From contig NIVC01001451.1 in the NCBI GenBank assembly GCA_002269645.1, positions 1 through 64,000 on the forward strand: a stretch of 64,000 bases of DNA, read 5' to 3'. The position numbers were made by a program, and so were the translations under genes. The notes beneath the pieces are model-generated. The model was not told where the DNA came from. It searched no databases and saw nothing but the letters and a program-made list of their open reading frames with translations. This DNA comes from Macrostomum lignano. Its lineage: Eukaryota. Positions 13,639 through 57,531 of the stretch are shown piece by piece. Position 1 is the stretch's first letter. Every line of letters starts with the position of its first letter.

Positions 13639-13730
13639 GTACGCAATATTTACTGTAAGGTTAATTGTGCTAATATCTTTTTGTGAGTTACGCAGCGCGT
13701 TTTTCCTTTATTCCGCCTTTTAGTCCGTGA

Positions 13731-13758: not shown

Positions 13759-14924
13759 AAAAGAAATGCAATACAGGTTTTTTTAATAAGCAACATGTAG
13801 CTAAGCCTTGAAATCTTAAAAAATCTCCTGTCAAACTTCTAACCATAACCCCAACCCTAACCATAACCCTAAATTTAATATTTTGTTCACGAGTTTTTGC
13901 ATGATGCTTGCATTATTTTTTTGCATGACGCTTCCATAAACATTTTAATAGGCTACATGAGCTAAGTTATAAGCTACCCTAACCCTAGCCCTAAGCCAAA
14001 TCTTAACGCTATACCCTGAACCTAACACTAAACCTTGAAACCCTAACACCAACCCTACAGCCTGACATTTGCATAAGTTTGTGAAGCGCTAAAGCACCAA
14101 ATTTTTGTGAACAGAATATTCTCAGTGACATGAAATATTTGAAGCTTTATTTATTTCCGCGATAGCACATCACTACAAAGAACGTGCATATACGCCTACC
14201 ATTTAATACTTGAATACTTTAAGTGTAGGACAATACGAAACTGCATGAATGAATTCGCCGAACTATTAAACATTTCTGTAAGTTTTACGATTATTATACA
14301 CAGTACAAAAAACTGTTTTATCCATTTTTAACTGCTATAACTAACAAAGAAGCAAACGGCAACAAAAACAATGTGCTTTTAATTAAATTTTAAACAACCG
14401 AAAATTGACGTTCAGCAGTTAAAACAATATTTAAACCAACCCATGTATTTATTCAAATGATATGATATGATCTTCTGCTGCTAATACGAGCGTAGCAAGT
14501 GAAAATTTGCAATAATGTAATAATTTATTAACAAAAGGATCGACTGTCGCTTCGGCAGATGGTGCCATCGACAAGCAGCCAGTATAGCTTTAGCGGTACA
14601 AAAATTTACATGTATATGCCATCCTGACTACCTGCCGACTCGCGTCACTGCTCAATTGCATGCATTCGGTGTAAGCAAATGTAGAGACATTCATTCTCAA
14701 ACCAAACATTAAGTCGCTCCGCTCTGCTTAAGGCTGCTACAGAGCTTGACTGCAAATGCTCCTTTTAGAGTCTGGAACCACAGGGTATACAGAGCAGCTC
14801 CTATACACCATTCACAAACTCTTTTAGCCCAGTTAAGATGCAGTCAACCTACTCTCAATGAGGGCTGCTTCATAAATTCCAATTATACATACAGGTTTGA
14901 CCTGCTTATACCTGTACTATATCT

Positions 14925-15180
14925 GTTTACTGACTGTATTTTATGGTCTGTTTAGAGGCTGTATTAGTGACTGTATTATTGTCTGTTTAGAGGCTGTATT
15001 GTCTGTTAAACGACTGTATTGTCTGTTTAGAGGCTGTATTGTCTGTTAAACGACTGTATTGTCTGTTTAAAGGCTGTATTGTGTGTTTAGAGGCTGTATT
15101 GTCTTTTTAGAGACTGCATTGTCTGTTTAGAGGCTGTATTGCCTGTTTAGGGACTGCATCATTCTGTTAAAAGACTGTAT
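14925..15180 (+). repeat. 20-bp minisatellite (GTCTGTTTAGAGGCTGTATT), short form
   Basis: About a dozen degenerate units; the same short form occurs at about 19377-19632 and 40370-40604. Confidence 0.95.
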
Positions 15181-15334
15181 TTATTGTGTAATTTCTACTT
15201 TAAGTACTGTTATATTTATGTCCCTATGAGTATAAGGAGGAATTTATGAAACATTCCTCGTAAATAGGATTTACTCAATGTGCTCTCTCAGGGCTATCAG
15301 TTCATTGAGACTCTACGCGACTTTGATTTCACTC

Positions 15335-16539
15335 TCAGCCATCAGACGCTCGGGTCAAAAAAGTGGCACGCGCCAACTGTGGCAACTCACTGATACGAAG
15401 TGCTGTTCTGTACGCTGTGATCATCGAACGACATTCTGCTCGACTCATCCTGACAGTCGGCACCTCCACTGCGGTGAAACTGACTCCGGTCATCACCCGT
15501 CGACACTCGTCAAATCGGGTATCGCCTTCCTTTGCATTCCTATACCAGTCAGCCAAGACTCTGGCTTCACCATCGTCACTGTTGCATTTTACGTCAGAGT
15601 TCGAGCATCCCAACGTGACGGAGCCCGAATACTCCTGCACCTTTGCTCTTCTTATGGACAAAACATCGCCGATGTTCCACCTGTCCACTTGAGCTGACGA
15701 CGAACCCCAAAACGTGCAGCTTACAGAGCCGAAGGTTCGGTCAACCAAAGTCACTTTGGCTACGTTAACCTTCTTCCCAGCACGCGTTCGGACTTTTTCA
15801 GGCGGTTGCCTGGCGTCGATCACTCCCAGCACATCGACGATTCTGATAGTGAAAGGGAGCAGTACTTTTTTTAACTATTTACACACTAACTTAAGCATCA
15901 CATTAGATTTCTAAAGTATTTGTACACTAACAGGAGCATCATGAAACTAATAACCCAGGCTTCGTACAGTGTTGCGATGATAAATATTTTCAAACACAAG
16001 ACAAACTAACTGTCACCCAAAAACACGATTACATGTACTTTAACTCCGCGATATTTGAGCACTAATACATGACGAAAACTACTAAATCAATTAGTCACTC
16101 ACCTGTCCAATCCAGTCTGTTGCAGTTGACTAGTGTAATTAATTACTGGATCTCGAGCAACCGGCACTTCGTTGCTTCTTTAGATGAAGCCCTTGGAATC
16201 CACGGAAACGGTCATCTCAAGTGGATTGTCCGTACACTTGTACTCTGGCTTGGCAGTCTTCACCATCCCGCCGGATATGCGAACGGCTTCAGCATCGTTG
16301 CAAACTTCCCAGACAGCTTGCAGGTCCTTACCGAAGACGCTGACTCGCATCTCAGATGAGTCGTCCACCAAGATGAACGAAAACACTTGGCCCTGACCTT
16401 TGTTGTTATTATACGTGTGAACGTCTTTCAGGTTCGTCACAAGGCCAGTGACAGGCGTAGGCATTTGACCAGCTGTCAGACCTGCAATCCCATCCTTCTT
16501 CGACTTCTTTTTCAAAGGTGACTGTGAATAAGAGGCCAT
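15335..16539 (-). pseudogene. RPA1-like OB-fold gene, unit 1 (in-frame stop in exon 1; 372-bp deletion fusing exons 2 and 3)
   Basis: Exon 1 reads MASYSQSPLKKKSKK..VTGLVTNLKDV..GQVFSFILVDDSSEMRVSVFG..VRISGGMVK..EYK (DBD-A-like). It splices in phase (GAC AG|A ATC) to exon 2, IVDVLGVI..VTLVD..SVSCTFWG..IGDVLSIRRAKVQEYSG..L..WY (DBD-B-like). Confidence 0.8.
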
Positions 16540-17403
16540 TTTGCACAAAGAATTATCCAACAGTCGAAAAAGGAACTGATAAAAAGTATCAATCAAACTT
16601 TTTCTAAGCAATGATAAGCTTTAACTTTAAGACAACAAAATAGGCTCAACAAATCACAAAGTATATATGTTGAAATAAAAGTAGCCACGAAAAAACACCA
16701 CCTCCCCTCCAGCCCAGTACATTGTACTCAATTTTGCATTCATTTTTATTTTTATTACACAATCTAATTGGCTGGACACACAACCCACCCCAATCACTCC
16801 CGTGCCCAGCATTAAAGCACACACTGCACCCTCTGCTGTAAGCTAAGGTCTCCTCACTTTTCTCACCTGATACTTTTGTTTGTTTGCTATCTCGTTTTAT
16901 GGTGACACAATTCTCACCGACTGACTCAGCAAGTGTAGGCAATACTTTAAGAGTTCGCGGTTGCATGTACTTCACTGTACAAACAAAACTTGTATGGCGC
17001 GGCTGACTGGTTCAGCCATTTTCGCACCTTCTAAGCCGGGAAAGAAAAACAGGCGACCCTCAAGTCAGGCTGCATGGCCACCAGTACGCTAGACAATTTG
17101 TAGACCAATCGCCGCTCTAAAGCCCCGACCTGCACACCCTCGCTTGCACAACCGACCAATAGGAAGCCTCAGACTTGTACAGAAAATCACCCTAAGGCTC
17201 AGCGAAGCGACGACGCACAACCCATAACCCCTATTTTATTCGCCCCTACACCTCAGTTTCAGTGCTTATATAGTCTGATTTATACATTTAGAGTCATATA
17301 TTTCTATATTAGAGTCATCTAATTGTAGCCTGTTACTGACTTTCATGCTACTCGTATTATTACTGATAAATTTGCAAAAATTTTCTCCTCTTTTAATTGC
17401 CAG

Positions 17404-18131
17404 TTGTTTGTTTCTTCTGCGGAGGCCGCCACCGCGTAGCCAGCTGTAACGCTATGAAGGCCGCCGCCCGCCATTTGCAGCAGCAACAGCAGCCGCAGCA
17501 ACAGCAGCCGCAGCAACAGCAGCCGCAGCAACAGCAGCCGCAGCAACAGCAGCCGCAGCAACAGCAGCCGCAGCAACAGCAGCCGCAGCAACAGCAGCCG
17601 CAGCAACAGCAGCCACAGCAACAGCAGCCACAGCAACAGCAGCCGCAGCAACAGCAGCCGCAGCAACAGCAGCCGCAGCAACAGCAGCCGCAGCAACAGC
17701 AGCCACAGCAACAGCAGCCGCAGCAACAGCAGCCGCAGCAACAGCAGCCGCAGCAACAGCAGCCGCAGCAACAGCAGCCGCAGCAACAGCAGCCGCAGCA
17801 ACAGCAGCCGCAGCAACAGCAGCCGCAGCAACAGCAGCCACAGCAACAGCAGCCGCAGCAACAGCAGCCGCAGCAACAGCAGCCGCAGCAACAGCAGCCG
17901 CAGCAACAGCAGCCGCAGCAACAGCAGCCGCAGCAACAGCAGCCGCAGCAACAGCAGCCGCAGCAACAGCAGCCGCAGCAACAGCAGCCGCAGCAACAGC
18001 AGCCGCAGCAACAGCAGCCGCAGCAACAGCAGCCGCAGCAACAGCAGCCACAGCAACAGCAGCCGCAGCAACAGCAGCCGCAGCAACAGCAGCCGCAGCA
18101 GCCATCGCCACGCAGAATGAAAATTGACTAA
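17404..18131 (+). pseudogene. Zinc-knuckle/(QQQQP)41 exon lacking the RGG first exon, unit 1
   Basis: Acceptor TTGCCAG at 17403 is retained; the upstream ATG/RGG exon is deleted. The 15-bp unit CAGCAACAGCAGCCR spans 17481-18095. Confidence 0.7.
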
Positions 18132-18434
18132 AAATTTTAATAATACAATAGTAACAATTTACTGAACGTTTTTTGACTTTTGATTAAAATCCGTGATAGA
18201 CTTATTTAATTTTTCGAACTTTTGAAACGATGACGCACCAGTGAAAAGTTTTGATAACAGAATGTTCTAATGACGTGAAATATTTGGAGTAAAATTCATT
18301 TCCGCCATAGGATGTCATTACAAAGAAGGACCCTACATATACACGTACCATTTCATACTTGCATACAGAACGAAAAAAGAATGGAATACATTTTTAATTA
18401 ATAAATAAGCTACATGAACTAAGTCATAAACAAA

Positions 18435-18458
18435 CCCTAACCCTAACCCTAGCCCTAA
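18435..18458 (+). repeat. Interstitial telomere-like repeats (CCCTAA/CCCTAG x4)
   Basis: Also at 22887-22910 and 28786-28809, with degenerate blocks at about 13842-13872 and 13977-14058. Confidence 0.8.
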
Positions 18459-19786
18459 CGCCAATCTGAACACTAACCCTATACAAGCCTAAACTTAAAA
18501 CCAAACCTATGGCCTGGCATCTGCATAAGTTTGTGAACCGCACCAGTACAAAGTTTTGTGAACAGAATATTCTAATGCCATGAAATATTCGAAGTACAAA
18601 TTTTCGCCATAGCATGTCATTAAAAAGAATGACCGTTGCATATACACTTACCATTTCATACTTGCTTACTTTGAAAGTAGAACAATACGAAACTGCATGA
18701 ATGAATTCGCCGAACTATTAAACATTTCTGTAAGTTTTACGATTATTATACACAGTACAAAAAACTGTTTTATCCATTTTTAACTGCTATAACTAACAAA
18801 GAAGCAAACGGCAACAAAAACAATGTGCTTTTAATTAAATTTTAAACAACCGAAAATTGACGTTCAGCAGTTAAAACAATATTTAAACCAACCCATGTAT
18901 TTATTCAAATGATATGATATGATCTTCTGCTGCTAATACGAGCGTAGCAAGTGAAAATTTGCAATAATGTAATAATTTATTAACAAAAGGATCGACTGTC
19001 GCTTCGGCAGATGGTGCCATCGACAAGCAGCCAGTATAGCTTTAGCGGTACAAAAATTTACATGTATATGCCATCCTGACTACCTGCCGACTCGCGTCAC
19101 TGCTCAATTGCATGCATTCGGTGTAAGCAAATGTAGAGACATTCATTCTCAAACCAAACATTAAGTCGCTCCGCTCTGCTTAAGGCTGCTACAGAGCTTG
19201 ACTGCAAATGCTCCTTTTAGAGTCTGGAACCACAGGGTATACAGAGCAGCTCCTATACACCATTCACAAACTCTTTTAGCCCAGTTAAGATGCAGTCAAC
19301 CTACTCTCAATGAGGGCTGCTTCATAAATTCCAATTATACATACAGGTTTGACCTGCTTATACCTGTACTATATCTGTTTACTGACTGTATTTTATGGTC
19401 TGTTTAGAGGCTGTATTAGTGACTGTATTATTGTCTGTTTAGAGGCTGTATTGTCTGTTAAACGACTGTATTGTCTGTTTAGAGGCTGTATTGTCTGTTA
19501 AACGACTGTATTGTCTGTTTAAAGGCTGTATTGTGTGTTTAGAGGCTGTATTGTCTTTTTAGAGACTGCATTGTCTGTTTAGAGGCTGTATTGCCTGTTT
19601 AGGGACTGCATCATTCTGTTAAAAGACTGTATTTATTGTGTAATTTCTACTTTAAGTACTGTTATATTTATGTCCCTATGAGTATAAGGAGGAATTTATG
19701 AAACATTCCTCGTAAATAGGATTTACTCAATGTGCTCTCTCAGGGCTATCAGTTCATTGAGACTCTACGCGACTTTGATTTCACTC

Positions 19787-20991
19787 TCAGCCATCAGACG
19801 CTCGGGTCAAAAAAGTGGCACGCGCCAACTGTGGCAACTCACTGATACGAAGTGCTGTTCTGTACGCTGTGATCATCGAACGACATTCTGCTCGACTCAT
19901 CCTGACAGTCGGCACCTCCACTGCGGTGAAACTGACTCCGGTCATCACCCGTCGACACTCGTCAAATCGGGTATCGCCTTCCTTTGCATTCCTATACCAG
20001 TCAGCCAAGACTCTGGCTTCACCATCGTCACTGTTGCATTTTACGTCAGAGTTCGAGCATCCCAACGTGACGGAGCCCGAATACTCCTGCACCTTTGCTC
20101 TTCTTATGGACAAAACATCGCCGATGTTCCACCTGTCCACTTGAGCTGACGACGAACCCCAAAACGTGCAGCTTACAGAGCCGAAGGTTCGGTCAACCAA
20201 AGTCACTTTGGCTACGTTAACCTTCTTCCCAGCACGCGTTCGGACTTTTTCAGGCGGTTGCCTGGCGTCGATCACTCCCAGCACATCGACGATTCTGATA
20301 GTGAAAGGGAGCAGTACTTTTTTTAACTATTTACACACTAACTTAAGCATCACATTAGATTTCTAAAGTATTTGTACACTAACAGGAGCATCATGAAACT
20401 AATAACCCAGGCTTCGTACAGTGTTGCGATGATAAATATTTTCAAACACAAGACAAACTAACTGTCACCCAAAAACACGATTACATGTACTTTAACTCCG
20501 CGATATTTGAGCACTAATACATGACGAAAACTACTAAATCAATTAGTCACTCACCTGTCCAATCCAGTCTGTTGCAGTTGACTAGTGTAATTAATTACTG
20601 GATCTCGAGCAACCGGCACTTCGTTGCTTCTTTAGATGAAGCCCTTGGAATCCACGGAAACGGTCATCTCAAGTGGATTGTCCGTACACTTGTACTCTGG
20701 CTTGGCAGTCTTCACCATCCCGCCGGATATGCGAACGGCTTCAGCATCGTTGCAAACTTCCCAGACAGCTTGCAGGTCCTTACCGAAGACGCTGACTCGC
20801 ATCTCAGATGAGTCGTCCACCAAGATGAACGAAAACACTTGGCCCTGACCTTTGTTGTTATTATACGTGTGAACGTCTTTCAGGTTCGTCACAAGGCCAG
20901 TGACAGGCGTAGGCATTTGACCAGCTGTCAGACCTGCAATCCCATCCTTCTTCGACTTCTTTTTCAAAGGTGACTGTGAATAAGAGGCCAT
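19787..20991 (-). pseudogene. RPA1-like OB-fold gene, unit 2
   Basis: Same structure as unit 1 at +4452. Confidence 0.8.
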
Positions 20992-21855
20992 TTTGCACAA
21001 AGAATTATCCAACAGTCGAAAAAGGAACTGATAAAAAGTATCAATCAAACTTTTTCTAAGCAATGATAAGCTTTAACTTTAAGACAACAAAATAGGCTCA
21101 ACAAATCACAAAGTATATATGTTGAAATAAAAGTAGCCACGAAAAAACACCACCTCCCCTCCAGCCCAGTACATTGTACTCAATTTTGCATTCATTTTTA
21201 TTTTTATTACACAATCTAATTGGCTGGACACACAACCCACCCCAATCACTCCCGTGCCCAGCATTAAAGCACACACTGCACCCTCTGCTGTAAGCTAAGG
21301 TCTCCTCACTTTTCTCACCTGATACTTTTGTTTGTTTGCTATCTCGTTTTATGGTGACACAATTCTCACCGACTGACTCAGCAAGTGTAGGCAATACTTT
21401 AAGAGTTCGCGGTTGCATGTACTTCACTGTACAAACAAAACTTGTATGGCGCGGCTGACTGGTTCAGCCATTTTCGCACCTTCTAAGCCGGGAAAGAAAA
21501 ACAGGCGACCCTCAAGTCAGGCTGCATGGCCACCAGTACGCTAGACAATTTGTAGACCAATCGCCGCTCTAAAGCCCCGACCTGCACACCCTCGCTTGCA
21601 CAACCGACCAATAGGAAGCCTCAGACTTGTACAGAAAACCACCCTAAGGCTCAGCGAAGCGACGACGCACAACCCATAACCCCTATTTTATTCGCCCCTA
21701 CACCTCAGTTTCAGTGCTTATATAGTCTGATTTATACATTTAGAGTCATATATTTCTATATTAGAGTCATCTAATTGTAGCCTGTTACTGACTTTCATGC
21801 TACTCGTATTATTACTGATAAATTTGCAAAAATTTTCTCCTCTTTTAATTGCCAG

Positions 21856-22583
21856 TTGTTTGTTTCTTCTGCGGAGGCCGCCACCGCGTAGCCAGCTGTA
21901 ACGCTATGAAGGCCGCCGCCCGCCATTTGCAGCAGCAACAGCAGCCGCAGCAACAGCAGCCGCAGCAACAGCAGCCGCAGCAACAGCAGCCGCAGCAACA
22001 GCAGCCGCAGCAACAGCAGCCGCAGCAACAGCAGCCGCAGCAACAGCAGCCGCAGCAACAGCAGCCACAGCAACAGCAGCCACAGCAACAGCAGCCGCAG
22101 CAACAGCAGCCGCAGCAACAGCAGCCGCAGCAACAGCAGCCGCAGCAACAGCAGCCACAGCAACAGCAGCCGCAGCAACAGCAGCCGCAGCAACAGCAGC
22201 CGCAGCAACAGCAGCCGCAGCAACAGCAGCCGCAGCAACAGCAGCCGCAGCAACAGCAGCCGCAGCAACAGCAGCCGCAGCAACAGCAGCCACAGCAACA
22301 GCAGCCGCAGCAACAGCAGCCGCAGCAACAGCAGCCGCAGCAACAGCAGCCGCAGCAACAGCAGCCGCAGCAACAGCAGCCGCAGCAACAGCAGCCGCAG
22401 CAACAGCAGCCGCAGCAACAGCAGCCGCAGCAACAGCAGCCGCAGCAACAGCAGCCGCAGCAACAGCAGCCGCAGCAACAGCAGCCGCAGCAACAGCAGC
22501 CACAGCAACAGCAGCCGCAGCAACAGCAGCCGCAGCAACAGCAGCCGCAGCAGCCATCGCCACGCAGAATGAAAATTGACTAA
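21856..22583 (+). pseudogene. Zinc-knuckle/(QQQQP)41 exon, unit 2
   Basis: Copy of unit 1 at +4452. Confidence 0.7.
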
Positions 22584-23885
22584 AAATTTTAATAATACAA
22601 TAGTAACAATTTACTGAACGTTTTTTGACTTTTGATTAAAATCCGTGATAGACTTATTTAATTTTTCGAACTTTTGAAACGATGACGCACCAGTGAAAAG
22701 TTTTGATAACAGAATGTTCTAATGACGTGAAATATTTGGAGTAAAATTCATTTCCGCCATAGGATGTCATTACAAAGAAGGACCCTACATATACACGTAC
22801 CATTTCATACTTGCATACAGAACGAAAAAAGAATGGAATACATTTTTAATTAATAAATAAGCTACATGAACTAAGTCATAAACAAACCCTAACCCTAACC
22901 CTAGCCCTAACGCCAATCTGAACACTAACCCTATACAAGCCTAACCTTAAAACCAAACCTATGGCCTGGCATCTGCATAAGTTTGTGAACCGCACCAGTA
23001 CAAAGTTTTGTGAACAGAATATTCTAATGCCATGAAATATTCGAAGTACAAATTTTCGCCATAGCATGTCATTAAAAAGAATGACCGTTGCATATACACT
23101 TACCATTTCATACTTGCTTACTTTGAAAGTAGAACAATACGAAACTGCATGAATGAATTCGCCGAACTATTAAACATTTCTGTAAGTTTTACGATTATTA
23201 TACACAGTACAAAAAACTGTTTTATCCATTTTTAACTGCTATAACTAACAAAGAAGCAAACGGCAACAAAAACAATGTGCTTTTAATTAAATTTTAAACA
23301 ACCGAAAATTGACGTTCAGCAGTTAAAACAATATTTAAACCAACCCATGTATTTATTCAAATGATATGATATGATCTTCTGCTGCTAATACGAGCGTAGC
23401 AAGTGAAAATTTGCAATAATGTAATAATTTATTAACAAAAGGATCGACTGTCGCTTCAGCAGATGATGCCATCGACAAGCAGCCAGTATAGCTTTAGCGG
23501 TACAAAAATTTACATGTATATGCCATCCTGACTACCTGCCGACTCGCGTCACTGCTCAATTGCATGCATTCGGTGTAAGCAAATGTAGAGACACTCATTC
23601 TCAAACCAAACATTGAGTCGCTCAGCTCTGCTTAAGGCTGCTACAGAGCTTGACTGCAAATGCTCCTTTTAGAGTCTGGAACCACAGGGTATATAGAGCA
23701 GCTCCTATACACCATTCACAAACTCTTTTAGCCCAGTTAAGATGCAGTCAACCTACTCTCAATGAGGGCTGCTTCATAAATTCCAATTATACATACATGT
23801 TTGACCTGCTTATACCTGTACTATTTCTGTTTACTGACTGTATTTTATGGTCTGTTTAGAGGCTGTATTTTATGGTCTGTTTAAA

Positions 23886-24160
23886 CCCCAAAAGACTAAC
23901 GCAGAATAAAAGCAAGTGGCACAAAAGACCGGCAGACGCGGCCCAGAAAGGGAAAACGAACCCCTTAAGCGACGAAATATATTGATTTTGTAATTTAAAA
24001 GAGAAAAAAATATTTTGCCAAAATTACGCCGACTCAGCGGCCGCGACGCGTGACTAAATAGCACAGAGCGGGGGGGAGGCTGCCCTAAGCCCTGCACGCA
24101 CGCAGAGCACCAGCACCCCACCAACCCACCAAAGCGAGGCCAGGCCGGCGCGGGGGGGGG
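23886..24160. mobile_element. About 275-bp insert flanked by TTTAAA (possible MITE)
   Basis: TTTAAA|CCCC...GGGG|TTTAAA. Present in units 3-5 (also 29785-30058 and 35127-35400) and absent in units 1, 2 and 6. Inverted terminal match is short. Confidence 0.45.
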
Positions 24161-24203
24161 TTTAAAACCAGTTAAAGTCAGATACCTGCCTCAAACTGAC
24201 GTA

Positions 24204-25120: not shown

Positions 25121-25298
25121 ATCATTTTATGTTAGACGACTGTATTTATTGTGTAATGTCTACTTTAAGTACTGTTATATTTATGTCCTATGAGTATAAG
25201 GAGGAACTTATGAAACATTCCTCGTAAATAGGATTTACTCAATGCACTCTCTCAGGGCTATCAGTTCATTGAGACTCTACGCGACTTTGATTTCACTC

Positions 25299-31196: not shown

Positions 31197-32768
31197 TCAG
31201 CCATCAGACGCTCGGGTCAAAAAAGTGGCACGCGCCAACTGTGGCAACTCACTGATACGAAGTGCTGTTCTGTACGCTGTGATCATCGAACGACATTCTG
31301 CTCGACTCATCCTGACTGTCGACACCTCCACTGCGGTGAAACTGACTCCGGTCATCACCCGTCGACACTCGTCTGTATCGAATCTGCGAGAAGAAAAAAT
31401 TTATAAGGATATAGAATATGTGTGACAAGAAAGTCCTATTAAGCATGAATACATAAAAGCAACACAATAAGTACTGTTCTCTTTGCTATTCAATTTGCGA
31501 TTATCAAAATAAATGGCTTAACTGAACACCTGTCTAACCTTGTAACCTAACAAACTTTATTATATTTAATAATCAACTAAATTTGTAGAAAATCACTCAC
31601 CTTTTGGCATTTCCGAAGTCCCTCACAATTTCCTTTGAGTGTTTGTCATAAAACTCAAACAAGGCAGCAGGCTCCCGAATGGTGGTCACACTTTCGTCTC
31701 CAATCTCATCAGTCCTGGAGTAGGCACTGGAGCGGGCACAGGTTCAAACCGGGTATCGCCTTCCTTTGCATTCCTATACCAGTCAGCCAAGACTCTGGCT
31801 TCACCATCGTCACTGTTGCATTTTACGTCAGAGTTCGAGCATCCCAACGTGACGGAGCCCGAATACTCCTGCACCTTTGCTCTTCTTATGGACAAAACAT
31901 CGCCGATGTTCCACCTGTCCACTTGAGCTGACGACGAACCCCAAAACGTGCAGCTTACAGAGCCGAAGGTTCGGTCAACCAAAGTCACTTTGGCTACGTT
32001 AACCTTCTTCCCAGCACGCGTTCGGACTTCTTCAGACGGTTGCCTGGCGTCGATCACTCCCAGCACATCGACGATTCTGATAGTGAAAGGGAGCAATACT
32101 TTTTTTAACTATTTACACACTAACTTAAGCATCACATTAGATTTCTATTTGTACACTAACAGTAGCATCATGAAGCTAATAACCCAGGCTTCGTACAGTG
32201 TTGCGATGATAAATATTTTCAAACACAAGGCAAACTAACTGTCACCCAAAAACACGATTACATGTACTTTCACTCCACGATATTTGAGCACTAATACATG
32301 ACGAAAACTACTAAATCAATTAGTCACTCACCTGTCCAATCCAGTCTGTTGCAGTTGACTAGTGTAATTAATTACTGGATCTCGAGCAACCGGCACTTCG
32401 TTGCTTCTTTAGATGAAGCCCTTGGAATCCACGGAAACGGTCATCTCAAGTGGATTGTCCGTACACTTGTACTCTGGCTTGGCAGTCTTCACCATCCCGC
32501 CGGATATGCGAACGGCTTCAGCATCGTTGCAAACTTCCCAGACAGCTTGCAGGTCCTTACCGAAGACGCTGACTCGCATCTCAGATGAGTCGTCCACCAA
32601 GATGAACGAAAACACTTGGCCCTGACCTTTGTTGTTATTATACGTGTGAACGTCTTTCAGGTTCGTCACAAGGCCAGTGACAGGCGTAGGCATTTGACCA
32701 GCTGTCAGACCTGCAATCCCATCCTTCTTCGACTTCTTTTTCAAAGGTGACTGTGAATAAGAGGCCAT
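31197..32768 (-). pseudogene. RPA1-like OB-fold gene, unit 4
   Basis: Same exon structure and lesions as unit 3, with a few substitutions (e.g. QPSEEV for QPPEKV). Confidence 0.8.
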
Positions 32769-33333
32769 TTTGCACAAAGAATTATCCAACAGTCGAAAAA
32801 GGAACTGATAAAAAGTATCAATCAAACTTTTTCTAAGCAATGATAAGCTTTAACTTTAAGACAACAAAATAGGCTCAACAAATCACAAAGTATATATGTT
32901 GAAATAAAAGTAGCCACGAAAAAACACCACCTCCCCTCCAGCCCAGTACATTGTACTCAATTTTGCATTCATTTTTATTTTTATTACACAATCTAATTGG
33001 CTGGACACACAACCCACCCCAATCACTCCCGTGCCCAGCATTAAAGCACACACTGCACCCTCTGCTGTAAGCTAAGGTCTCCTCACTTTTCTCACCTGAT
33101 ACTTTTGTTTGTTTGCTATCTCGTTTTATGGTGACACAATTCTCACCGACTGACTCAGCAAGTGTAGGCAATACTTTAAGAGTTCGCGGTCGCATGTACT
33201 TCACTGTACAAACAAAACTTGTATGGCGCGGCTGACTGGTTCAGCCATTTTCGCACCTTCTAAGCCGGGAAAGAAAAACAGGCGACCCTCAAGTCAGGCT
33301 GCATGGCCACCAGTACGCTAGACAATTTGTAGA

Positions 33334-33502
33334 CCAATCGCCGCTCTAAAGCCCCGACCTGCACACCCTCGCTTGCACAACCGACCAATAGGAAGCCTCA
33401 GACTTGTACAGAAAACCACCCTAAGGCTCAGCGAAGCGACGACGCACAACCCATAACCCCTATTTTATTCGCCCCTACACCTCAGTTTCAGTGCCTATAT
33501 AG
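33334..33502 (+). promoter_or_regulatory. Candidate bidirectional promoter core (paired CCAAT boxes + TATA-like)
   Basis: CCAAT at 33334 and 33385, and TATATAG at 33496, about 25 nt before TCATAAT. A YY1-like CCATTTT lies just left, at the RPA-like 5' end. The CCAAT pair is present in every complete unit (e.g. 17105 and 17156). Confidence 0.5.
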
Positions 33503-33541
33503 TCTGATTCGTTTTTAGAGTCATAATAATAAAAAAATAAG

Positions 33542-34115
33542 ATGCATATTACACAAATATTCGGCGGCGGTAGAAGGCGAGGCGGCAGCGGTAGGCGAGG
33601 CGGCTGGCAGCGCGGCAGCGGCCCACGCGGAAAGAGTAGTGAGTACCTTCCTAAGACACTGTAAATCTTCAGCTTTGAGTACATTCGAGTATAGTCCTAA
33701 ATTTAATCTAATTGTAGCCTGTTACCGACTTTCATGCTACTCGTATTATTACTGATAAATTTTGCAAAAATTTCCCTTCTTTTAATTGCCAGTCGTTTGT
33801 TTCTTCTGCGGAGGCCGCCACCGCGTAGCCAGCTGCAACGCGATGAAGGCCGCCGCCCGCCTTCTGCAGCAGCAACAGCAGCAGCAACAGCAGCAGCAGC
33901 AGCCGCAGCAGCCGCAGCAACAGGAGCAGCCGCAGCAACAGCAGCAGCATCAGCAGCCGCAGCAACAGCAGCAGCAGCAGCCGCAGCAGCAGCAACAGCA
34001 GCCGCAGCAACAGCAGCAGCAGCAGCCGCAGCAGCAGCAACAGCAGCAGCAGCAGCCGCAGCAGCAGCAACAGCAGCCGCAGCAACAGCAGCCGCAGCCA
34101 ATGAATTTCCAATGA
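33542..34115 (+). CDS. Two-exon RGG-rich / CCHC zinc-knuckle / polyQ protein (139 aa), unit 4
   Basis: Exon 1 33542-33638 (MHITQIFGGGRRRGGSGRRGGWQRGSGPRGKS), donor GTGAGT in phase 1. Intron 33639-33792 with a pyrimidine tract and CAG. Exon 2 33793-34115 (IVCFFCGGRHRVASC, then a Q/P tract). AATAAA at 34137. Confidence 0.75.
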
Positions 34116-36498
34116 ATATTTATTTTAATATATATAAATAAACTATATCTTAGTAAACTATATTACTTTTTTGACTTTTGATTAAAATCCGCGATAGACT
34201 TATTTATTTTTTTGGACTTTTGAAAGAATGGCGCACCAGTACAAAGTTTTGTGAACAGAATATTCTAATGCCATGAAATATTCAAAGTATAATTCATTCT
34301 CACCATAGCATGTCATGACAAAGAATGACCGTACATACACACCTACCATTTCATACTGGCTTACTTTGAAAGTAGAACAATACGAAACTGCATGAATGAA
34401 TTCGCCGAACTATTAAACATTTATAAGTTTTTCGATTATTATACACAGTACAAAAAACTGTTTTATCCATCTTTAACTGCTATAACTAACAAAGAAGCAA
34501 ACGGCAAATTAAATTTTAAACTATTAACAACCACAAATTGAAGTTTAAAAATTGAAACAAAAGTTAAACAAACACTTGTATTTATTCCAACGATATATGT
34601 ATGATCTGCTTCTGACTACTAACGCTGAGCAAGTTTAATATTTCGTACAGATATTGAAAAATGTAATAATTTATTACAAAAGGATCGACTGTCGCTTCAG
34701 CAGATGATGCCATCGACAAGCAGCCAGTATAGCTTTAGCGGTACAAAAATTTACATGTATATGCCATCCTGACTACCTGCCGACTCGCGTCACTGCTCAA
34801 TTGCATGCATTCGGTGTAAGCAAATGTAGAGACATTCATTCTCAAACCAAACATTAAGTCGCTCAGCTCTGCTTAAGGCTGCTACAGAGCTTGACTGCAA
34901 ATGCTCCTTTTAGAGTCTGGAACCACAGGGTATATAGAGCAGCTCCTATACACCATTCACAAACTCTTTTAGCCCAGTTAAGATGCAGTCAACCTACTCT
35001 CAATGAGGGCTGCTTCATAAATTCCAATTATACATACATGTTTGACCTGCTTATACCTGTACTATTTCTGTTTACTGACTGTATTTTATGGTCTGTTTAG
35101 AGGCTGTATTTTATGGTCTGTTTAAACCCCAAAAGACTAACGCAGAATAAAAGCAAGTGGCACAAAAGACCGGCAGACGCGGCCCAGAAAGGGAAAACGA
35201 ACCCCTTAAGCGACGAAATATATTGATTTTGTAATTTAAAAGAGAAAAAAATATTTTGCCAAAATTACGCCGACTCAGCGGCCGCGACGCGTGACTAAAT
35301 AGCACAGAGCGGGGGGAGGCTGCCCTAAGCCCTGCACGCACGCAGAGCACCAGCACCCCACCAACCCACCAAAGCGAGGCCAGGCCGGCGCGGGGGGGGG
35401 TTTAAAACCAGTTAAAGTCAGATACCTGCCTCAAACTGACGTATTAGAGGCTTTATTGTCTGTTTACTGACTGTACTTTATGGTCTGTTTAGAGGCTGTA
35501 TTGTCTGTTTAGAGGCTTTATTGTCTGTTTAGAGGCTGTATTGTCTGTTTAGAGACTGTATTGCCTATTTAGAGACTGTATTGCCTGTTTAGAGACTGTA
35601 TTGCCTATTTAGAGACTGTATTGTCTGTTTAGAGACTGAATTGTCTGTTTAGAGACTGAATTGTCTGTTTAAAGGCTGTATTGTCTGTTTAGAGGCCGTA
35701 TTGTCTGTTTAGAGGCTGCATTGTCTATTTAGAGGCTGCATTCTCTGTTTAGAGGCTGCATTGTCTGTTTAGAGACTGTATTGTCTATTTAGAGGCTGCA
35801 TTCTCTGTTTAGAGGCTGTATTGTCTGTTTAGAGACTGTATTGTCTATTTAGAGGCTGCATTCTCTGTTTAGAGGCTGCATTGTCTATTTAGAAGCTGCA
35901 TTCTCTGTTTAGAGGCTGTATTGTCTGTTTAGAGACTGTATTGTCTATTTAGAGGCTGCATTCTCTGTTTAGAGGCTGCATTGTCTATTTAGAGGCTGCA
36001 TTCTCTGTTTAGAGGCTGTATTGTCTGTTTAGAGGCTGTATTGTCTGTTTAGAGGCTGTATTGTCTGTTTAGAGGCTGCATTGTCTATTTAGAGGCTGCA
36101 TTCTCTGTTTAGAGGCTGCATTGTCTATTTAGAGACTGTATTGTCTGTTTAGAGGCTGCATTGTCTATTTAGAGGCTGCATTCTCTGTTTAGAGGCTGCA
36201 TTGTCTATTTAGAGGCTGCATTCTCTGTTTAGAGGCTGCATTGTCTATTTAGAGGCTGCATTGTCTGTTTAGAGACTGCATTTTCTGTTTAGAGGCTGTA
36301 TTTTCCTGTTTAGGGACTGCATCATTTTATGTTAGACGACTGTATTTATTGTGTAATGTCTACTTTAAGTACTGTTATATTTATGTCCTATGAGTATAAG
36401 GAGGAACTTATGAAACATTCCTCGTAAATAGGATTTACTCAATGCACTCTCTCAGGGCTATCAGTTCATTGAGACTCTACGCGACTTTGATTTCACTC

Positions 36499-38070
36499 TC
36501 AGCCATCAGACGCTCGGGTCAAAAAAGTGGCACGCGCCAACTGTGGCAACTCACTGATACGAAGTGCTGTTCTGTACGCTGTGATCATCGAACGACATTC
36601 TGCTCGACTCATCCTGACTGTCGACACCTCCACTGCGGTGAAACTGACTCCGGTCATCACCCGTCGACACTCGTCTGTATCGAATCTGCGAGAAGAAAAA
36701 ATTTATAAGGATATAGAATATGTGTGACAAGAAAGTCCTATTAAGCATGAATACATAAAAGCAACACAATAAGTACTGTTCTCTTTGCTATTCAATTTGC
36801 GATTATCAAAATAAATGGCTTAACTGAACACCTGTCTAACCTTGTAACCTAACAAACTTTATTATATTTAATAATCAACTAAATTTGTAGAAAATCACTC
36901 ACCTTTTGGCATTTCCGAAGTCCCTCACAATTTCCTTTGAGTGTTTGTCATAAAACTCAAACAAGGCAGCAGGCTCCCGAATGGTGGTCACACTTTCGTC
37001 TCCAATCTCATCAGTCCTGGAGTAGGCACTGGAGCGGGCACAGGTTCAAACCGGGTATCGCCTTCCTTTGCATTCCTATACCAGTCAGCCAAGACTCTGG
37101 CTTCACCATCGTCACTGTTGCATTTTACATCAGAGTTCGAGCATCCCAACGTGACGGAGCCCGAATACTCCTGCACCTTTGCTCTTCTTATGGACAAAAC
37201 ATCGCCGATGTTCCACCTGTCCACTTGAGCTGACGACGAACCCCAAAACGTGCAGCTTACAGAGCCGAAGGTTCGGTCAACCAAAGTCACTTTGGCTACG
37301 TTAACCTTCTTCCCAGCACGCGTTCGGACTTCTTCAGACGGTTGCCTGGCGTCGATCACTCCCAGCACATCGACGATTCTGATAGTGAAAGGGAGCAATA
37401 CTTTTTTTAACTATTTACACACTAACTTAAGCATCACATTAGATTTCTATTTGTACACTAACAGTAGCATCATGAAGCTAATAACCCAGGCTTCGTACAG
37501 TGTTGCGATGATAAATATTTTCAAACACAAGGCAAACTAACTGTCACCCAAAAACACGATTACATGTACTTTCACTCCACGATATTTGAGCACTAATACA
37601 TGACGAAAACTACTAAATCAATTAGTCACTCACCTGTCCAATCCAGTCTGTTGCAGTTGACTAGTGTAATTAATTACTGGATCTCGAGCAACCGGCACTT
37701 CGTTGCTTCTTTAGATGAAGCCCTTGGAATCCACGGAAACGGTCATCTCAAGTGGATTGTCCGTACACTTGTACTCTGGCTTGGCAGTCTTCACCATCCC
37801 GCCGGATATGCGAACGGCTTCAGCATCGTTGCAAACTTCCCAGACAGCTTGCAGGTCCTTACCGAAGACGCTGACTCGCATCTCAGATGAGTCGTCCACC
37901 AAGATGAACGAAAACACTTGGCCCTGACCTTTGTTGTTATTATACGTGTGAACGTCTTTCAGGTTCGTCACAAGGCCAGTGACAGGCGTAGGCATTTGAC
38001 CAGCTGTCAGACCTGCAATCCCATCCTTCTTCGACTTCTTTTTCAAAGGTGACTGTGAATAAGAGGCCAT
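36499..38070 (-). pseudogene. RPA1-like OB-fold gene, unit 5
   Basis: Near-identical to unit 4. Confidence 0.8.
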
Positions 38071-38843
38071 TTTGCACAAAGAATTATCCAACAGTCGAAA
38101 AAGGAACTGATAAAAAGTATCAATCAAACTTTTTCTAAGCAATGATAAGCTTTAACTTTAAGACAACAAAATAGGCTCAACAAATCACAAAGTATATATG
38201 TTGAAATAAAAGTAGCCACGAAAAAACACCACCTCCCCTCCAGCCCAGTACATTGTACTCAATTTTGCATTCATTTTTATTTTTATTACACAATCTAATT
38301 GGCTGGACACACAACCCACCCCAATCACTCCCGTGCCCAGCATTAAAGCACACACTGCACCCTCTGCTGTAAGCTAAGGTCTCCTCACTTTTCTCACCTG
38401 ATACTTTTGTTTGTTTGCTATCTCGTTTTATGGTGACACAATTCTCACCGACTGACTCAGCAAGTGTAGGCAATACTTTAAGAGTTCGCGGTCGCATGTA
38501 CTTCACTGTACAAACAAAACTTGTATGGCGCGGCTGACTGGTTCAGCCATTTTCGCACCTTCTAAGCCGGGAAAGAAAAACAGGCGACCCTCAAGTCAGG
38601 CTGCATGGCCACCAGTACGCTAGACAATTTGTAGACCAATCGCCGCTCTAAAGCCCCGACCTGCACACCCTCGCTTGCACAACCGACCAATAGGAAGCCT
38701 CAGACTTGTACAGAAAACCACCCTAAGGCTCAGCGAAGCGACGACGCACAACCCATAACCCCTATTTTATTCGCCCCTACACCTCAGTTTCAGTGCCTAT
38801 ATAGTCTGATTCGTTTTTAGAGTCATAATAATAAAAAAATAAG

Positions 38844-39417
38844 ATGCATATTACACAAATATTCGGCGGCGGTAGAAGGCGAGGCGGCAGCGGTAGGCGA
38901 GGCGGCTGGCAGCGCGGCAGCGGCCCACGCGGAAAGAGTAGTGAGTACCTTCCTAAGACACTGTAAATCTTCAGCTTTGAGTACATTCGAGTATAGTCCT
39001 AAATTTAATCTAATTGTAGCCTGTTACCGACTTTCATGCTACTCGTATTATTACTGATAAATTTTGCAAAAATTTCCCTTCTTTTAATTGCCAGTCGTTT
39101 GTTTCTTCTGCGGAGGCCGCCACCGCGTAGCCAGCTGCAACGCGATGAAGGCCGCCGCCCGCCTTCTGCAGCAGCAACAGCAGCAGCAACAGCAGCAGCA
39201 GCAGCCGCAGCAGCCGCAGCAACAGGAGCAGCCGCAGCAACAGCAGCAGCATCAGCAGCCGCAGCAACAGCAGCAGCAGCAGCCGCAGCAGCAGCAACAG
39301 CAGCCGCAGCAACAGCAGCAGCAGCAGCCGCAGCAGCAGCAACAGCAGCAGCAGCAGCCGCAGCAGCAGCAACAGCAGCCGCAGCAACAGCAGCCGCAGC
39401 CAATGAATTTCCAATGA
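38844..39417 (+). CDS. Two-exon RGG-rich / CCHC zinc-knuckle / polyQ protein, unit 5
   Basis: Exons 38844-38940 and 39095-39417; same sequence as unit 4. Confidence 0.75.
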
Positions 39418-40661
39418 ATATTTATTTTAATATATATAAATAAACTATATCTTAGTAAACTATATTACTTTTTTGACTTTTGATTAAAATCCGCGATAGA
39501 CTTATTTATTTTTTTGGACTTTTGAAAGAATGGCGCACCAGTACAAAGTTTTGTGAACAGAATATTCTAATGCCATGAAATATTCAAAGTATAATTCATT
39601 CTCACCATAGCATGTCATGACAAAGAATGACCGTACATACACACTACCATTTCATACTGGCTTACTTTGAAAGTAGAACAATACGAAACTGCATGAATGA
39701 ATTCGCCGAACTATTAAACATTTATAAGTTTTTCGATTATTATACACAGTACAAAAAACTGTTTTATCCATCTTTAACTGCTATAACTAACAAAGAAGCA
39801 AACGGCAAATTAAATTTTAAACTATTAACAACCACAAATTGAAGTTTAAAAATTGAAACAAAAGTTAAACAAACACTTGTATTTATTCCAACGATATATG
39901 TATGATCTGCTTCTGACTACTAACGCTGAGCAAGTTTAATATTTCGTACAGATATTGAAAAATGTAATAATTTATTACAAAAGGATCGACTGTCGCTTCA
40001 GCAGATGATGCCATCGACAAGCAGCCAGTATAGCTTTAGCGGTACAAAAATGCACATGTATATGCCATCCTGACTACCTGCCGACTCGCGTCACTGCTCA
40101 ATTGCATGCATTCGGTGTAAGCAAATGTAGAGACATTCATTCTCAAACCAAACATTAAGTCGCTCAGCTCTGCTTAAGGCTGCTACAGAGCTTGACTGCA
40201 AATGCTCCTTTTAGAGTCTGGAACCACAGGGTATATAGAGCAGCTCCTATACACCATTCACAAACTCTTTTAGCCCAGTTAAGATGCAGTCAACCTACTC
40301 TCAATGAGGGCTGCTTCATAAATTCCAATTATACATACAGGTTTGACCTGCTTATACCTGTACTATATCTGTTTACTGACTGTATTTTATGGTCTGTTTA
40401 GAGGCTGTATTAGTGACTGTATTATTGTCTGTTTAGAGGCTGTATTGTCTGTTAAACGACTGTATTGTCTGTTTAAAGGCTGTATTGTGTGTTTAGAGGC
40501 TGTATTGTCTTTTTAGAGACTGCATTGTCTGTTTAGAGGCTGTATTGTCTGTTTAGAGGCTGTATTGTCTGTTTAGAGACTTTATTGTCTGTTTACTGAC
40601 TGTAGAGCTCTGAAATCACAAACACAAAAAAATCACAATGACAAAAATTATTGATTGAAAA

Positions 40662-52808: not shown

Positions 52809-57531
<4,723 letters not shown>

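Follow-up and report, generated by a model that had tools for sequence, protein, structure and literature searches.

A putative 28-kb non-autonomous Helitron of Macrostomum lignano with an internally amplified pair of head-to-head genes

The 64,000-nucleotide stretch of a Macrostomum lignano contig analysed here (the window) contains an array of about 27 kb in which an RPA-like gene and a small partner gene are repeated 5.2 times. The question raised by this locus is whether the array is a working two-gene module, a host gene cluster or part of a transposable element. Comparison of sequences leads to the verdict that the locus is best read as a non-autonomous Helitron that has decayed and been amplified internally.

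The tandem array and its RPA-like pseudogenes

Tandem amplification, placed at 14230-40604 in the first-pass annotation, was borne out by self-BLAST, which delimits the array at 13947-40602 and divides it into five full units of 4.5-5.9 kb and a partial unit of 1.07 kb, with 97.7-99.4% identity among units:

13947-18403, unit U1
18404-22855, unit U2
22856-28754, unit U3
28755-34231, unit U4
34232-39533, unit U5
39534-40602, partial unit at the array end

The KKKSKK, MASYS and knuckle motifs provide five anchors apiece. Unit length varies mainly with a 20-bp minisatellite (about 9 versus 45 copies) and a CAG-type repeat, and the differences between units are nested: a 370-bp deletion is confined to U1 and U2 and a 190-bp deletion to U1-U3, with further variation in polyQ and minisatellite lengths. 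The periods of the identity blocks also differ within the array (4457, 5884 and about 5302-5342 bp), in keeping with a series of unequal exchanges.

Each full unit includes a minus-strand two-exon gene that starts with MASYSQSPLKKKSKK and encodes two OB folds. Pfam recognises REPA_OB_2 in exon 2 (3e-10), the OB match of exon 1 being sub-threshold, and a profile of the gene family matches DBD-A/B of human RPA70 (1JMC) with E=6.5e-27 over both OB folds, so that the earlier assignment of two RPA1 DBD-A/B-like folds is upheld. The spliced gene with its KKKSKK start is present in every unit, as had been claimed, but all five copies in the array are pseudogenes:

15335-16539, minus strand, RPA-like pseudogene of U1: exon 1 16539-16103 (TAA 16182-16180), exon 2 from 15842, junction of the 370-bp deletion near 15510
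19787-20991, minus strand, RPA-like pseudogene of U2: lesions as in U1
25299-26875, minus strand, RPA-like pseudogene of U3: linker TAA, premature stop or probable frameshift near 25810, exon 3 25485-25355
31197-32768, minus strand, RPA-like pseudogene of U4: exon 1 32768-32332 (TAA 32411-32409), exon 2 32076-31601 (stop or frameshift near 31710), exon 3 31383-31253
36499-38070, minus strand, RPA-like pseudogene of U5: structure and lesions as in U4
47243-58842, plus strand, sixth RPA-like copy, heavily decayed: exon 1 47243-47600, exon 2 58548-58842, interrupted by nested LINE insertions

Exon 1 is 100% identical across all units, and an in-frame TAA in the linker between the OB folds, where homologues have F, Y, M or V, is common to all five copies. 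U1 and U2 additionally carry the 370-bp deletion, and in U3-U5 a premature stop or probable frameshift follows PVPTPG, the collinear match behind the frameshift being statistically weak. Because the nonsense codon is common and the later deletions differ, comparison of the copies shows that the one amplified was already dead. The sixth copy has a degenerate Helitron 3′ end of its own (59356-59383, plus strand).

The enclosing element and the origin of the array

The earlier guess that a rolling-circle element carries the genes is supported by canonical 5′-TC and hairpin-CTAG termini that bracket the array:

13731-41746, minus strand, predicted non-autonomous canonical Helitron of 28,016 bp with a 5′ TC end and a 3′ hairpin/CTAG, the whole array inside
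41050-41746, minus strand, Helitron 5′ terminus and leader of about 0.7 kb: TC at 41746-41745, TCAAATATACTAAAAAT from 41746 to 41730
40663-41050, no strand assigned, 23-bp satellite TGATTTTTACATGACGCTTCTA (TRF), about 17 copies in the gap between leader and array
13731-13755, minus strand, Helitron 3′ terminus: CCCCAACGGGGG palindrome, 9-nt spacer, CTAG, then T

Over about 1 kb, the leader shares 89% identity with that of a Rep/Hel-encoding, helicase-truncated Helitron copy (L001, 5372-6351), in which the satellite holds the same place (4015-5820); identity over leader and satellite together is 89-96%. Beyond the opposite end of the array are two degenerate satellite copies (13880-13945). The last 30 bp of the 3′ end match L001 at 26 positions and L002 at 25, the latter being a complete reference Helitron (A/TC...CTAG/T, 11.3 kb) that encodes Helitron_like_N (2.8e-47), PIF1 (1.1e-62) and then an RPA-like gene. 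A search for linkage to Rep and PIF1 helicase, proposed with the first-pass annotation, thus found homologous RPA-like genes, intact, inside M. lignano Helitrons that encode Helitron_like_N and PIF1 and have the same ends as the element in the window. Termini and homology are the sole basis for assigning the element, since no Rep/Hel was found in the window itself. Its 3′ hairpin has a stem of only 4-5 bp with an energy not distinguishable from that of shuffled sequences, and this copy gives no reading of the A/T target because the 5′ terminus immediately adjoins the CTAG of a neighbouring Helitron (41747-41750) instead of a host A. Between these two ends, at 13731 and 41746, no further Helitron termini were found. 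The array is probably (about 75%) the internal cargo of this single 28-kb minus-strand element.

Within such an element, the units would have been multiplied by unequal crossing-over or replication slippage, probably aided by the 20-bp and 23-bp minisatellites and the repeated 3′-subterminal block. The alternative that the Helitron built the array by its own rolling-circle replication, through terminator read-through or concatemerisation, each unit being a former complete non-autonomous Helitron with junctions since eroded, draws on several observations: exact head-to-tail CTAG/TC junctions are common in the family (41746/41747 in the window, two each in L001 and L011, three in L008), the element-3′ end of each unit is a block like the 3′ subterminal region, with TTAGGG-like repeats and CTTAG.TCATGTAGCTTATT, a motif like the 23-bp satellite comes after that block, and Helitron tandem arrays have been tied to rolling-circle replication (PMC12001565). 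It is nevertheless unlikely, because the unit junctions lack termini: hairpin, CTAG and TC-ATATACTAAA are found in none of the five, with mismatches allowed, and loss of both termini from every unit is not expected when units are just 0.6-2% diverged. The unequal block periods also match successive unequal exchanges instead. Over-expansion of one or two real units during assembly, which near-alike, minisatellite-bearing units could invite, is very improbable, for the discrete and consistently nested differences among units (the two deletions and the repeat lengths) are the pattern of real paralogues and not of a duplicated consensus. Least probable of all is a host cluster without a transposon, in which a lineage-specific RPA1 paralogue and its neighbour were amplified under dosage selection. 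Tandem amplification is a common way to raise gene dosage and one family member (P0015, at L003) does lie among ordinary host genes (HMG-box, HLH), but even that gene has a PIF1 fragment on one side and a Helitron 3′ end on the other; the five RPA-like pseudogenes share a stop, the array is bracketed by Helitron termini, and the rest of the window is wall-to-wall transposons.

The partner gene and the head-to-head pairing

On the plus strand, about 0.77 kb from the RPA-like gene and head-to-head with it, is the partner gene:

33542-34115, plus strand, intact partner gene of U4: exon 1 33542-33638 (MHITQIFGGGRRRGGSGRRGGWQRGSGPRGKS), GT-AG phase 1 intron, exon 2 33793-34115 (IVCFFCGGRHRVASC and polyQ/P), 139 aa
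38844-39417, plus strand, intact partner gene of U5: 139-aa product identical to that of U4
17404-18131, plus strand, U1 partner reduced to exon 2 by deletion of the RGG exon, with a 15-bp QQQQP repeat present 41 times
21856-22583, plus strand, partner exon 2 only, U2: equivalent of the U1 copy
27740-28482, plus strand, partner exon 2 only, U3: equivalent of the U1 copy
32769-33541, no strand assigned, predicted shared divergent promoter region of U4: CCAAT at 33334, 33385 (plus) and 33019 (plus), ATTGG at 32996, TATA at 33496; equivalent in every unit

The head-to-head arrangement and its paired CCAAT boxes had been pointed out before; the arrangement is real and the intergenic region has a TATA box and a pair of GACCAAT boxes separated by 51 bp, but CCAAT enrichment is weak (4 per 773 bp versus a window-wide 1.95 per kb). 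CCAAT/ATTGG boxes occur between the genes of L001 and L005 as well. An RGG exon, thought to occur in every complete unit, was found only in U4 and U5, where the partner is intact (RGG-rich exon, phase-1 intron, CX2CX3HX4C motif and polyQ); U1-U3 lack about 190 bp containing it. Nor does the description of a CCHC knuckle hold, since the spacing is non-canonical and Pfam gave no zf-CCHC match for the partners of the window, L005 or L006. The L001-type partner scores 12.8 bits against zf-CCHC (cut-off 20.8), and its domain order differs (PY/polyQ, knuckle, RS). The M. lignano gene model P0158 reproduces the first 48 aa of the U4 partner without a difference, splice junction included; no annotated homologues of the partner were found except one chimeric model.

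The pairing extends beyond this locus, to L005 and L006 and in variant form to L001, L007 and L011, spanning three diverged RPA-like subfamilies and both orientations relative to the element. A phase-1 intron just before the Cys/His motif is conserved at all five loci. In L003 and the P0006-type Helitrons (L002, L008-L010), the RPA-like gene is directly downstream of the helicase and the partner is absent; as one RPA-like subfamily does without the partner, the family does not require it.

There is a real possibility, though not the favoured one, that the plus-strand gene is no functional partner but a low-complexity orf or the decayed knuckle of a captured retroelement gag, hitch-hiking beside the RPA-like promoter, with the pairing reflecting common descent of a DNA segment and not function. 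Besides the missing Pfam match, the odd Cys/His spacing, the scarcity of annotated homologues, the different L001-type domain order and the Helitrons that manage without a partner, the protein is mostly polyQ and arginine low complexity, in which frames easily stay open; loss of exon 1 from three of the five units reveals no constraint, and a similar-looking copia gag knuckle, VCFFCNKPGH, occurs in the same window. Against this, conservation across the window, L005 and L006, comparisons in which the RPA-like proteins are about 50-60% identical and non-coding DNA is unalignable, extends to the ATG, the TATA box, a phase-1 GT-AG intron that lies 2-3 codons ahead of the first Cys, the spacing of the Cys/His motif and a Q-rich tract downstream of it, and the pair stays a unit through inversion relative to the element.

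Known systems and a proposed function

RPA-like genes in Helitrons are already known, with homologues in zebrafish and sea-anemone Helitrons and Drosophila Helentrons, and in rice the Mothra mother element, itself a non-autonomous Helitron, lacks RepHel but has retained an RPA-like gene and includes blocks of tandem repeats (PMC4683698). The window element resembles Mothra in these features, in having the termini of autonomous relatives and in the variable copy number of its repeats. It differs in its flatworm host, in a family protein of only DBD-A, DBD-B and a short lineage-specific tail (about 300-370 aa), in the head-to-head pairing with a small R-rich/Cys-His/polyQ gene, and in amplification of the whole gene pair 5.2-fold, not just short repeats, with every RPA-like copy a pseudogene.

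Likeness to canonical (Helitron1-type) Helitrons consists of the 5′-TC, the 3′-CTAG, a GC palindrome about 10 nt before the 3′ end, an A/T target (clean in L002), autonomous copies with Rep (Helitron_like_N) and PIF1 helicase, and frequent insertion head-to-tail in tandem; the lack of Rep/Hel in the window copy, the unusually short hairpin, the degenerate TTAGGG repeats in its 3′ subterminal region and an OTU-like N-terminal region that is only sub-threshold in autonomous copies of the family set it apart. Tandem arrays derived from Helitrons, as in Xenopus, have 2-7 copies of non-coding monomers of 121-1,996 nt (PMC12001565). Tandem organisation and minisatellites inside non-autonomous copies are shared with these, whereas the window monomer measures 4.5-5.9 kb, holds two genes and is repeated within a single pair of termini.

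Over their whole length, the tandem OB folds align with DBD-A and DBD-B of human RPA70/RPA1, but the N-terminal 70N/DBD-F is absent, as is DBD-C, zinc finger and trimerisation helix included; on this domain content, the RPA-like protein is not an RPA1 orthologue and presumably forms no RPA heterotrimer. The partner recalls CCHC zinc-knuckle/RGG-box proteins (zf-CCHC PF00098; gag nucleocapsid, CNBP-like) in its Cys-Cys-His-Cys motif beside an Arg/Gly-rich tract, and the L001-type partner has an RS repeat after a motif of canonical CX2CX4HX4C spacing; the partners of the window, L005 and L006, in contrast, have CX2CX3HX4C, one motif each, in a protein that is mostly polyQ. No description of such a partner was found in the literature, in keeping with the initial impression that the pairing was not a recognised system; the head-to-head pairing does not seem to have been described before, and the conserved partner gene counts as a modest novelty.

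The RPA-like protein of intact elements would coat the single-stranded transposition intermediate made by Rep/Hel, while the partner, expressed from a shared CCAAT/TATA promoter of about 0.8 kb, would act as an accessory nucleic-acid-binding or chaperone-type factor. The working single-strand-binding module of two genes that had been envisaged for this locus cannot operate here, because all five RPA-like copies are dead and the first exon is missing from three of the five partners. The module in the window would be a relic, from which at most the 139-aa partner of U4 and U5 could still be made.

The tandem array and the Helitron that carries it

Comparison of the window with itself located a genuine tandem array at 13947-40602, close to the 14230-40604 proposed in the first-pass annotation. 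It consists of five full units, each with a minus-strand RPA-like gene and a small plus-strand partner gene placed head-to-head, and a 1.07-kb partial sixth unit. The units as delimited by self-comparison are:

13947-18403, unit U1
18404-22855, unit U2
22856-28754, unit U3
28755-34231, unit U4
34232-39533, unit U5
39534-40602, partial sixth unit

The units are 97.7-99.4% identical to each other, and the peptide anchors MASYS, KKKSKK, GVIDAR and the Cys/His motif of the partner occur in exactly five copies each, spaced at unit periods. Unit lengths range from 4.45 to 5.9 kb, mainly because of a 20-bp minisatellite (approximately 9 copies versus 45) and a CAG/CAA-type repeat (a 15-mer present in 41 or 15 copies depending on the unit). 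Each unit boundary has a block resembling a Helitron 3′ subterminal region (TTAGGG-like repeats and CTTAG.TCATGTAGC). Degenerate TTAGGG/CCCTAA telomere-like repeats are present in the Helitron 3′ subterminal region and in every unit (window 13800-13880 and 18430-18480; 10500-10560 of L001, a Macrostomum lignano locus with a homologous RPA-like gene); subtelomeric accumulations of Helitrons have been reported for other animals. Neither Rfam nor tRNA scans, run over the full window, gave a match, and exact-sequence look-ups of the RPA-like exon 1 orf and of seven transposon orfs also returned nothing.

The proposal that a rolling-circle element carries the array is borne out by Helitron termini that bracket it on the minus strand. 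The 5′ terminus, TCAAATATACTAAAAAT from 41746, has a single match in the window and aligns with the 5′ ends (TCCTATATACTAAAAATG) of L001 and two further loci, L002 and L011; the leader of approximately 0.7 kb behind it aligns at 89% identity, and the leader together with a 23-bp satellite is 89-96% identical to the copy in L001, which encodes the Rep (Helitron_like_N) and PIF1 helicase of autonomous Helitrons (Rep/Hel). The 3′ terminus, CCCCAACGGGGG followed by CGTTGATTG and CTAG, runs from 13755 to 13731. The same hairpin-CTAG structure is found at L001, L002, L003, L006, L008 and L011, with homology ending at CTAG; the hairpin has a stem of just 4-5 bp, and its folding z-score against shuffled sequences (approximately -1) does not distinguish it from them. 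A pattern to capture Helitron termini in M. lignano would be TCYWATATACTAAA ... CCCC-N3-4-GGGG-N9-11-CTAG. By a rule cited in PMC4683698, Helitrons are assigned to the same family at 80% identity or more over the 3′-terminal 30 bp, a range that includes the window element (26/30 identical to L001, 25/30 to L002), with just 67-70% identity over the 5′ 30 bp. On its 3′ side the element is followed by T (CTAG/TCACGG); on its 5′ side it adjoins the CTAG of another Helitron, a tandem junction that masks the host A. An interpretation of the "leader + hairpin" block as one terminus was dropped because the minus-strand alignment shows a 3′-end/5′-end tandem junction.

No Rep/Hel was found in the window by tblastn with M. 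lignano Rep/Hel pieces, and therefore the element is non-autonomous. Since the termini bracket the array, no terminus-like sequence lies within it, and Rep/Hel is absent, the array is the cargo of one non-autonomous Helitron:

13731-41746, minus strand, Helitron of 28,016 bp enclosing the array

By its TC start, hairpin-CTAG end and family-level terminal identity this element would be classed as a canonical Helitron and, lacking Rep/Hel, as a non-autonomous one. The nearest known parallel is a rice Helitron called the "Mothra mother element", which has an RPA-like gene and variable blocks of tandem repeats and is without RepHel (PMC4683698).

The RPA-like gene and its partner

In each unit, exon 1 of the RPA-like gene opens with MASYSQSPLKKKSKK and closes at a perfect GTGAGT donor, and exon 2 is preceded by a CAG acceptor. 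Pfam identified REPA_OB_2 in exon 2 (3e-10), while the OB match of exon 1 was sub-threshold. A profile of the window protein and five homologues matches human RPA70 DBD-A/B (PDB 1JMC, E=6.5e-27) at profile positions 12-243 against chain residues 10-241, spanning both of the RPA1 DBD-A/B-like OB folds that had been claimed. The OB-fold assignment leans on this sequence-profile match because an AlphaFold2 model of P0004, an intact homologue, was poor (pLDDT 43 from a 5-sequence alignment). Among 5.8 billion proteins, close relatives were confined to ten M. lignano proteins (40-61% identity); an exhaustive representative search returned a small close family, followed by RPA70-length proteins of the ordinary kind (1e-43 to 1e-22). 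The protein starts approximately 12 residues ahead of DBD-A and its homologues end approximately 90-130 residues past DBD-B; no N-terminal 70N (DBD-F), no DBD-C, the trimerisation core with its zinc finger, and no further OB or zinc-finger match beyond DBD-A/B were found. The absence of 70N and DBD-C indicates that the family is not an RPA1 orthologue. The representative search also returned P0011, a predicted protein of 4022 aa composed of 26 near-identical RPA DBD-A/B-like stretches, which has the appearance of a further RPA-like fragment that was amplified in tandem and is read as a single orf.

The RPA-like copies of the window are dead, none of the five array units having an intact reading frame. 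Exon 1 is identical in all five; where homologues have F, Y, M or V in the inter-OB linker, it has an in-frame TAA (16182-16180 in U1). In U1 and U2 an additional 370-bp deletion fuses exon 2 to exon 3; in U3-U5 the copies end after PVPTPG and the conserved C-terminal motif goes on in another frame, a probable frameshift for which the collinear match is statistically weak. The working co-regulated module for binding single-stranded DNA that the first-pass annotation envisaged cannot hold for a locus in this state of decay. One more copy lies outside the array:

47243-47600 and 58548-58842, plus strand, sixth RPA-like copy, heavily decayed, intron filled by LINE elements

A reading of this copy as antisense within a minus-strand Helitron was dropped, because the copy has a 3′ end of its own on the plus strand, at 59356-59383.

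The partner gene begins at an ATG (33542 in U4, 38844 in U5) with a TATA box 46 bp upstream. In U4 and U5 a 97-nt exon 1 encoding MHITQIFGGGRRRGGSGRRGGWQRGSGPRGKS is followed by a phase 1 intron (GTGAGT...CAG) and by an exon 2 encoding IVCFFCGGRHRVASC and then polyQ/P, for an intact product of 139 aa. U1-U3 have lost approximately 190 bp including the first exon, and thus the RGG-knuckle gene attributed to every complete unit is present in two of the five. Nor is the knuckle of the CCHC type that was claimed: the motif CFFCGGRHRVASC has the spacing CX2CX3HX4C, one residue short, and does not match PF00098 (zf-CCHC) even at E<=10. The same spacing is kept in the partners at loci L005 and L006; the L001-type partner has the canonical CX2CX4HX4C spacing and a PF00098 score of 12.8 bits, below the cut-off of 20.8. 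Pfam returned only low-complexity noise for the partner proteins. As to the clustered RGG/RG repeats of an RGG-box protein, exon 1 in the window reads GGGRRRGGSGRRGGWQRGSGPRG and the L005 partner GRRRRRGGREG; the L006 partner is arginine-rich only (QQRRPRHPRK), and the L001 type has an RS repeat instead. Homologue searches with both partner types returned nothing except one chimeric M. lignano gene model, P0158 (UniRef). P0158 matches the partner at 100% identity over residues 1-48, a stretch that spans the predicted splice junction, and then continues into a reverse-transcriptase fragment; it thus independently reproduces the predicted junction, and it points to M. lignano, or something very near to it, as the source of the window.

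A spacer of 773 bp separates the two ATGs. It contains two GACCAAT boxes separated by 51 bp and two more CCAAT/ATTGG boxes (four versus approximately 1.5 expected, a density only about 2.7 times the window average), with a TATA box on the partner side. CCAAT/ATTGG boxes are also present in the intergenic regions of L001 and L005.

Recurrence of the pair in related Helitrons

The search for linkage to Rep/PIF1 succeeded: RPA-like homologues share Helitrons with Helitron_like_N and PIF1 orfs at L002 and L008-L010. The Helitron in L002 is canonical and complete and spans 11.3 kb, with a host A before TCCTATATACTAAAAATG at the 5′ end, orfs for Helitron_like_N (2.8e-47) and PIF1 (1.1e-62) followed by the RPA-like gene (P0006), and a 3′ end of CCCCGAAGGGGGG, 10 nt, CTAG and a host T, so that the insertion reads A/TC...CTAG/T. 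L008-L010 have the same layout of Rep/Hel, RPA-like gene and 3′ end, and L003 has a PIF1 fragment, the RPA-like gene and a 3′ end of the L002 kind. Helitron termini enclose the RPA-like orf in relatives as in the window, but the window copy is without Rep/Hel. An OTU protease domain, expected from the GDGNCFFHAV motif of autonomous copies, is not claimed (20.9 bits, below the cut-off of 23.3).

The pair is not confined to the window. In L005, a 2.7-kb contig, the RPA-like gene faces a minus-strand partner with a TATA box, comprising exon 1 MKIINNFYGSPSPFGRRRRRGGREGKKK, a phase 1 intron, ITCYLCAGPHPVRRC and polyQ. L006 has the architecture of the window: Rep/Hel is absent nearby, and a same-strand Helitron 3′ end lies downstream of an RPA-like gene of the P0001 type. 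Its partner is MKVTIIEKGQQRRPRHPRK / PIKCYFCGGPHRVARC with a Q-rich tail. L001, L007 and L011 are 14.4-kb elements with Rep/Hel and a P0004-type RPA-like gene, L001 and L011 being bounded by CTAG/TC junctions; here the RPA-like gene faces a variant partner that consists of a PY-rich/polyQ exon, a phase 1 intron, the canonical motif and the RS repeat, and the pair is inverted within the element relative to the window. At all paired loci the partner intron is in phase 1 and lies 2-3 codons ahead of the first Cys, and the RPA-like proteins of these loci have diverged to 40-60% identity. When a full unit was compared as DNA with the M. lignano loci, no non-coding sequence could be aligned apart from the Helitron ends. 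The partner gene is absent from P0006-type elements. The head-to-head arrangement is conserved, though not universally: an RPA-like gene cut down to the DBD-A/B core faces the partner in several sublineages, and intact copies are present in M. lignano.

Two further observations concern these loci. Approximately 5.5 kb from the pair in L006, a glycine-rich orf (GGGGGN...RGG) at 3079-3298 (minus strand) is followed by a canonical CX2CX4HX4C knuckle; the partner gene could be related to it or derive from it. At L001 10500-10779, a Helitron 3′ terminal fragment (TTAGGG-like repeats, GCTACATGTAG..., hairpin, CTAG), 87% identical to the 3′ end of the window element, lies inside an intron of the intact RPA-like gene P0004.

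RPA-like genes are the best-known accessory genes of Helitrons, and their role in rolling-circle transposition is not known to have been demonstrated. A literature search found no publication connecting Helitrons with a partner-type gene. The conserved partner appears to be the sole part undescribed so far. In intact elements, the two-OB protein would presumably coat the single-stranded DNA intermediate; the partner, judging from its motif content and conserved linkage, might bind or chaperone nucleic acid and be expressed jointly with the RPA-like gene from a promoter common to both. A tentative reading, with a probability of roughly 0.3, is that flatworm Helitrons carry an accessory gene for an arginine-rich, glutamine-rich protein of approximately 90-155 aa with a single Cys/His motif, divergent from the gene of an RPA-like single-strand-binding protein, as a two-gene module kept even through inversion, whose products may act jointly on the single-stranded transposition intermediate (e.g. 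as a binding protein with a nucleic-acid chaperone or condensate-forming partner). The pair offers a concrete two-protein system for testing, and M. lignano is a laboratory flatworm in which transgenesis is possible.

Origin of the array and neighbouring elements

One nonsense mutation is common to all RPA-like copies of the array, and therefore amplification started from a copy that no longer functioned; the unit-specific deletions form a nested pattern and are later. Amplification probably proceeded by unequal crossing-over or slippage within the element, which is favoured by the minisatellites and by the 3′-subterminal-like block that is repeated at every unit boundary. The main rival is rolling-circle concatemerisation, to which Helitron tandem arrays are attributed in the literature (PMC12001565) and with which the frequent CTAG/TC head-to-tail junctions among related Helitrons agree; what speaks against it is that all five unit junctions are without termini. 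The locus indicates that tandem arrays of kilobase scale that carry genes can form inside one Helitron. For annotation, the 27-kb "gene cluster" is pseudogene cargo of a transposon, to be masked and not counted as an RPA1 expansion.

Junctions in which CTAG is directly followed by TC...ATATACTAAA are very frequent among Helitrons related to the window element, and those of L008 include three consecutive non-autonomous copies of approximately 2 kb. To the right of each of the further 3′ ends in the window are arrays of 16-30-bp CCCCATCCAAAGAATC-type repeats, and the 3′ end at 63322, flank included, is identical to L009 4376-4401.

41746/41747, head-to-tail junction in the window
6417/6418 and 20797/20798, head-to-tail junctions in L001
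234/235 and 14600/14601, head-to-tail junctions in L011
2829, 4957 and 6801, head-to-tail junctions in L008
41772 to 41747, minus strand, Helitron 3′ end (window 41747-43561)
62117 to 62092 and 63322 to 63297, minus strand, Helitron 3′ ends (window 62092-63598)

A remnant of approximately 0.5 kb at 13190-13730, starting TCACGGACTAAAAGG, separates the array-bearing Helitron from the next hairpin (13204-13192, its CTAG degenerated to ATTC) and is possibly a degenerate mini-Helitron of the same head-to-tail series. The window also contains retrotransposons. Several are non-LTR elements (RT, RNase H and endonuclease-like orfs), and the intron of the decayed sixth RPA-like copy encloses those at 48-58 kb. 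A young copia-type LTR retrotransposon at 2900-7566 has LTRs that are 99.6% identical and a gag with the canonical knuckle CFFCNKPGHIKKHC.

2900-3161 and 7305-7566, LTRs of the copia-type element
3973-4014, knuckle of the copia-type gag
3244-5997 and 6019-7209, copia-type pol orfs
8285-9535, non-LTR retrotransposon coding region
48204-52738, plus strand, non-LTR retrotransposon coding region
52809-58366, minus strand, non-LTR retrotransposon coding region
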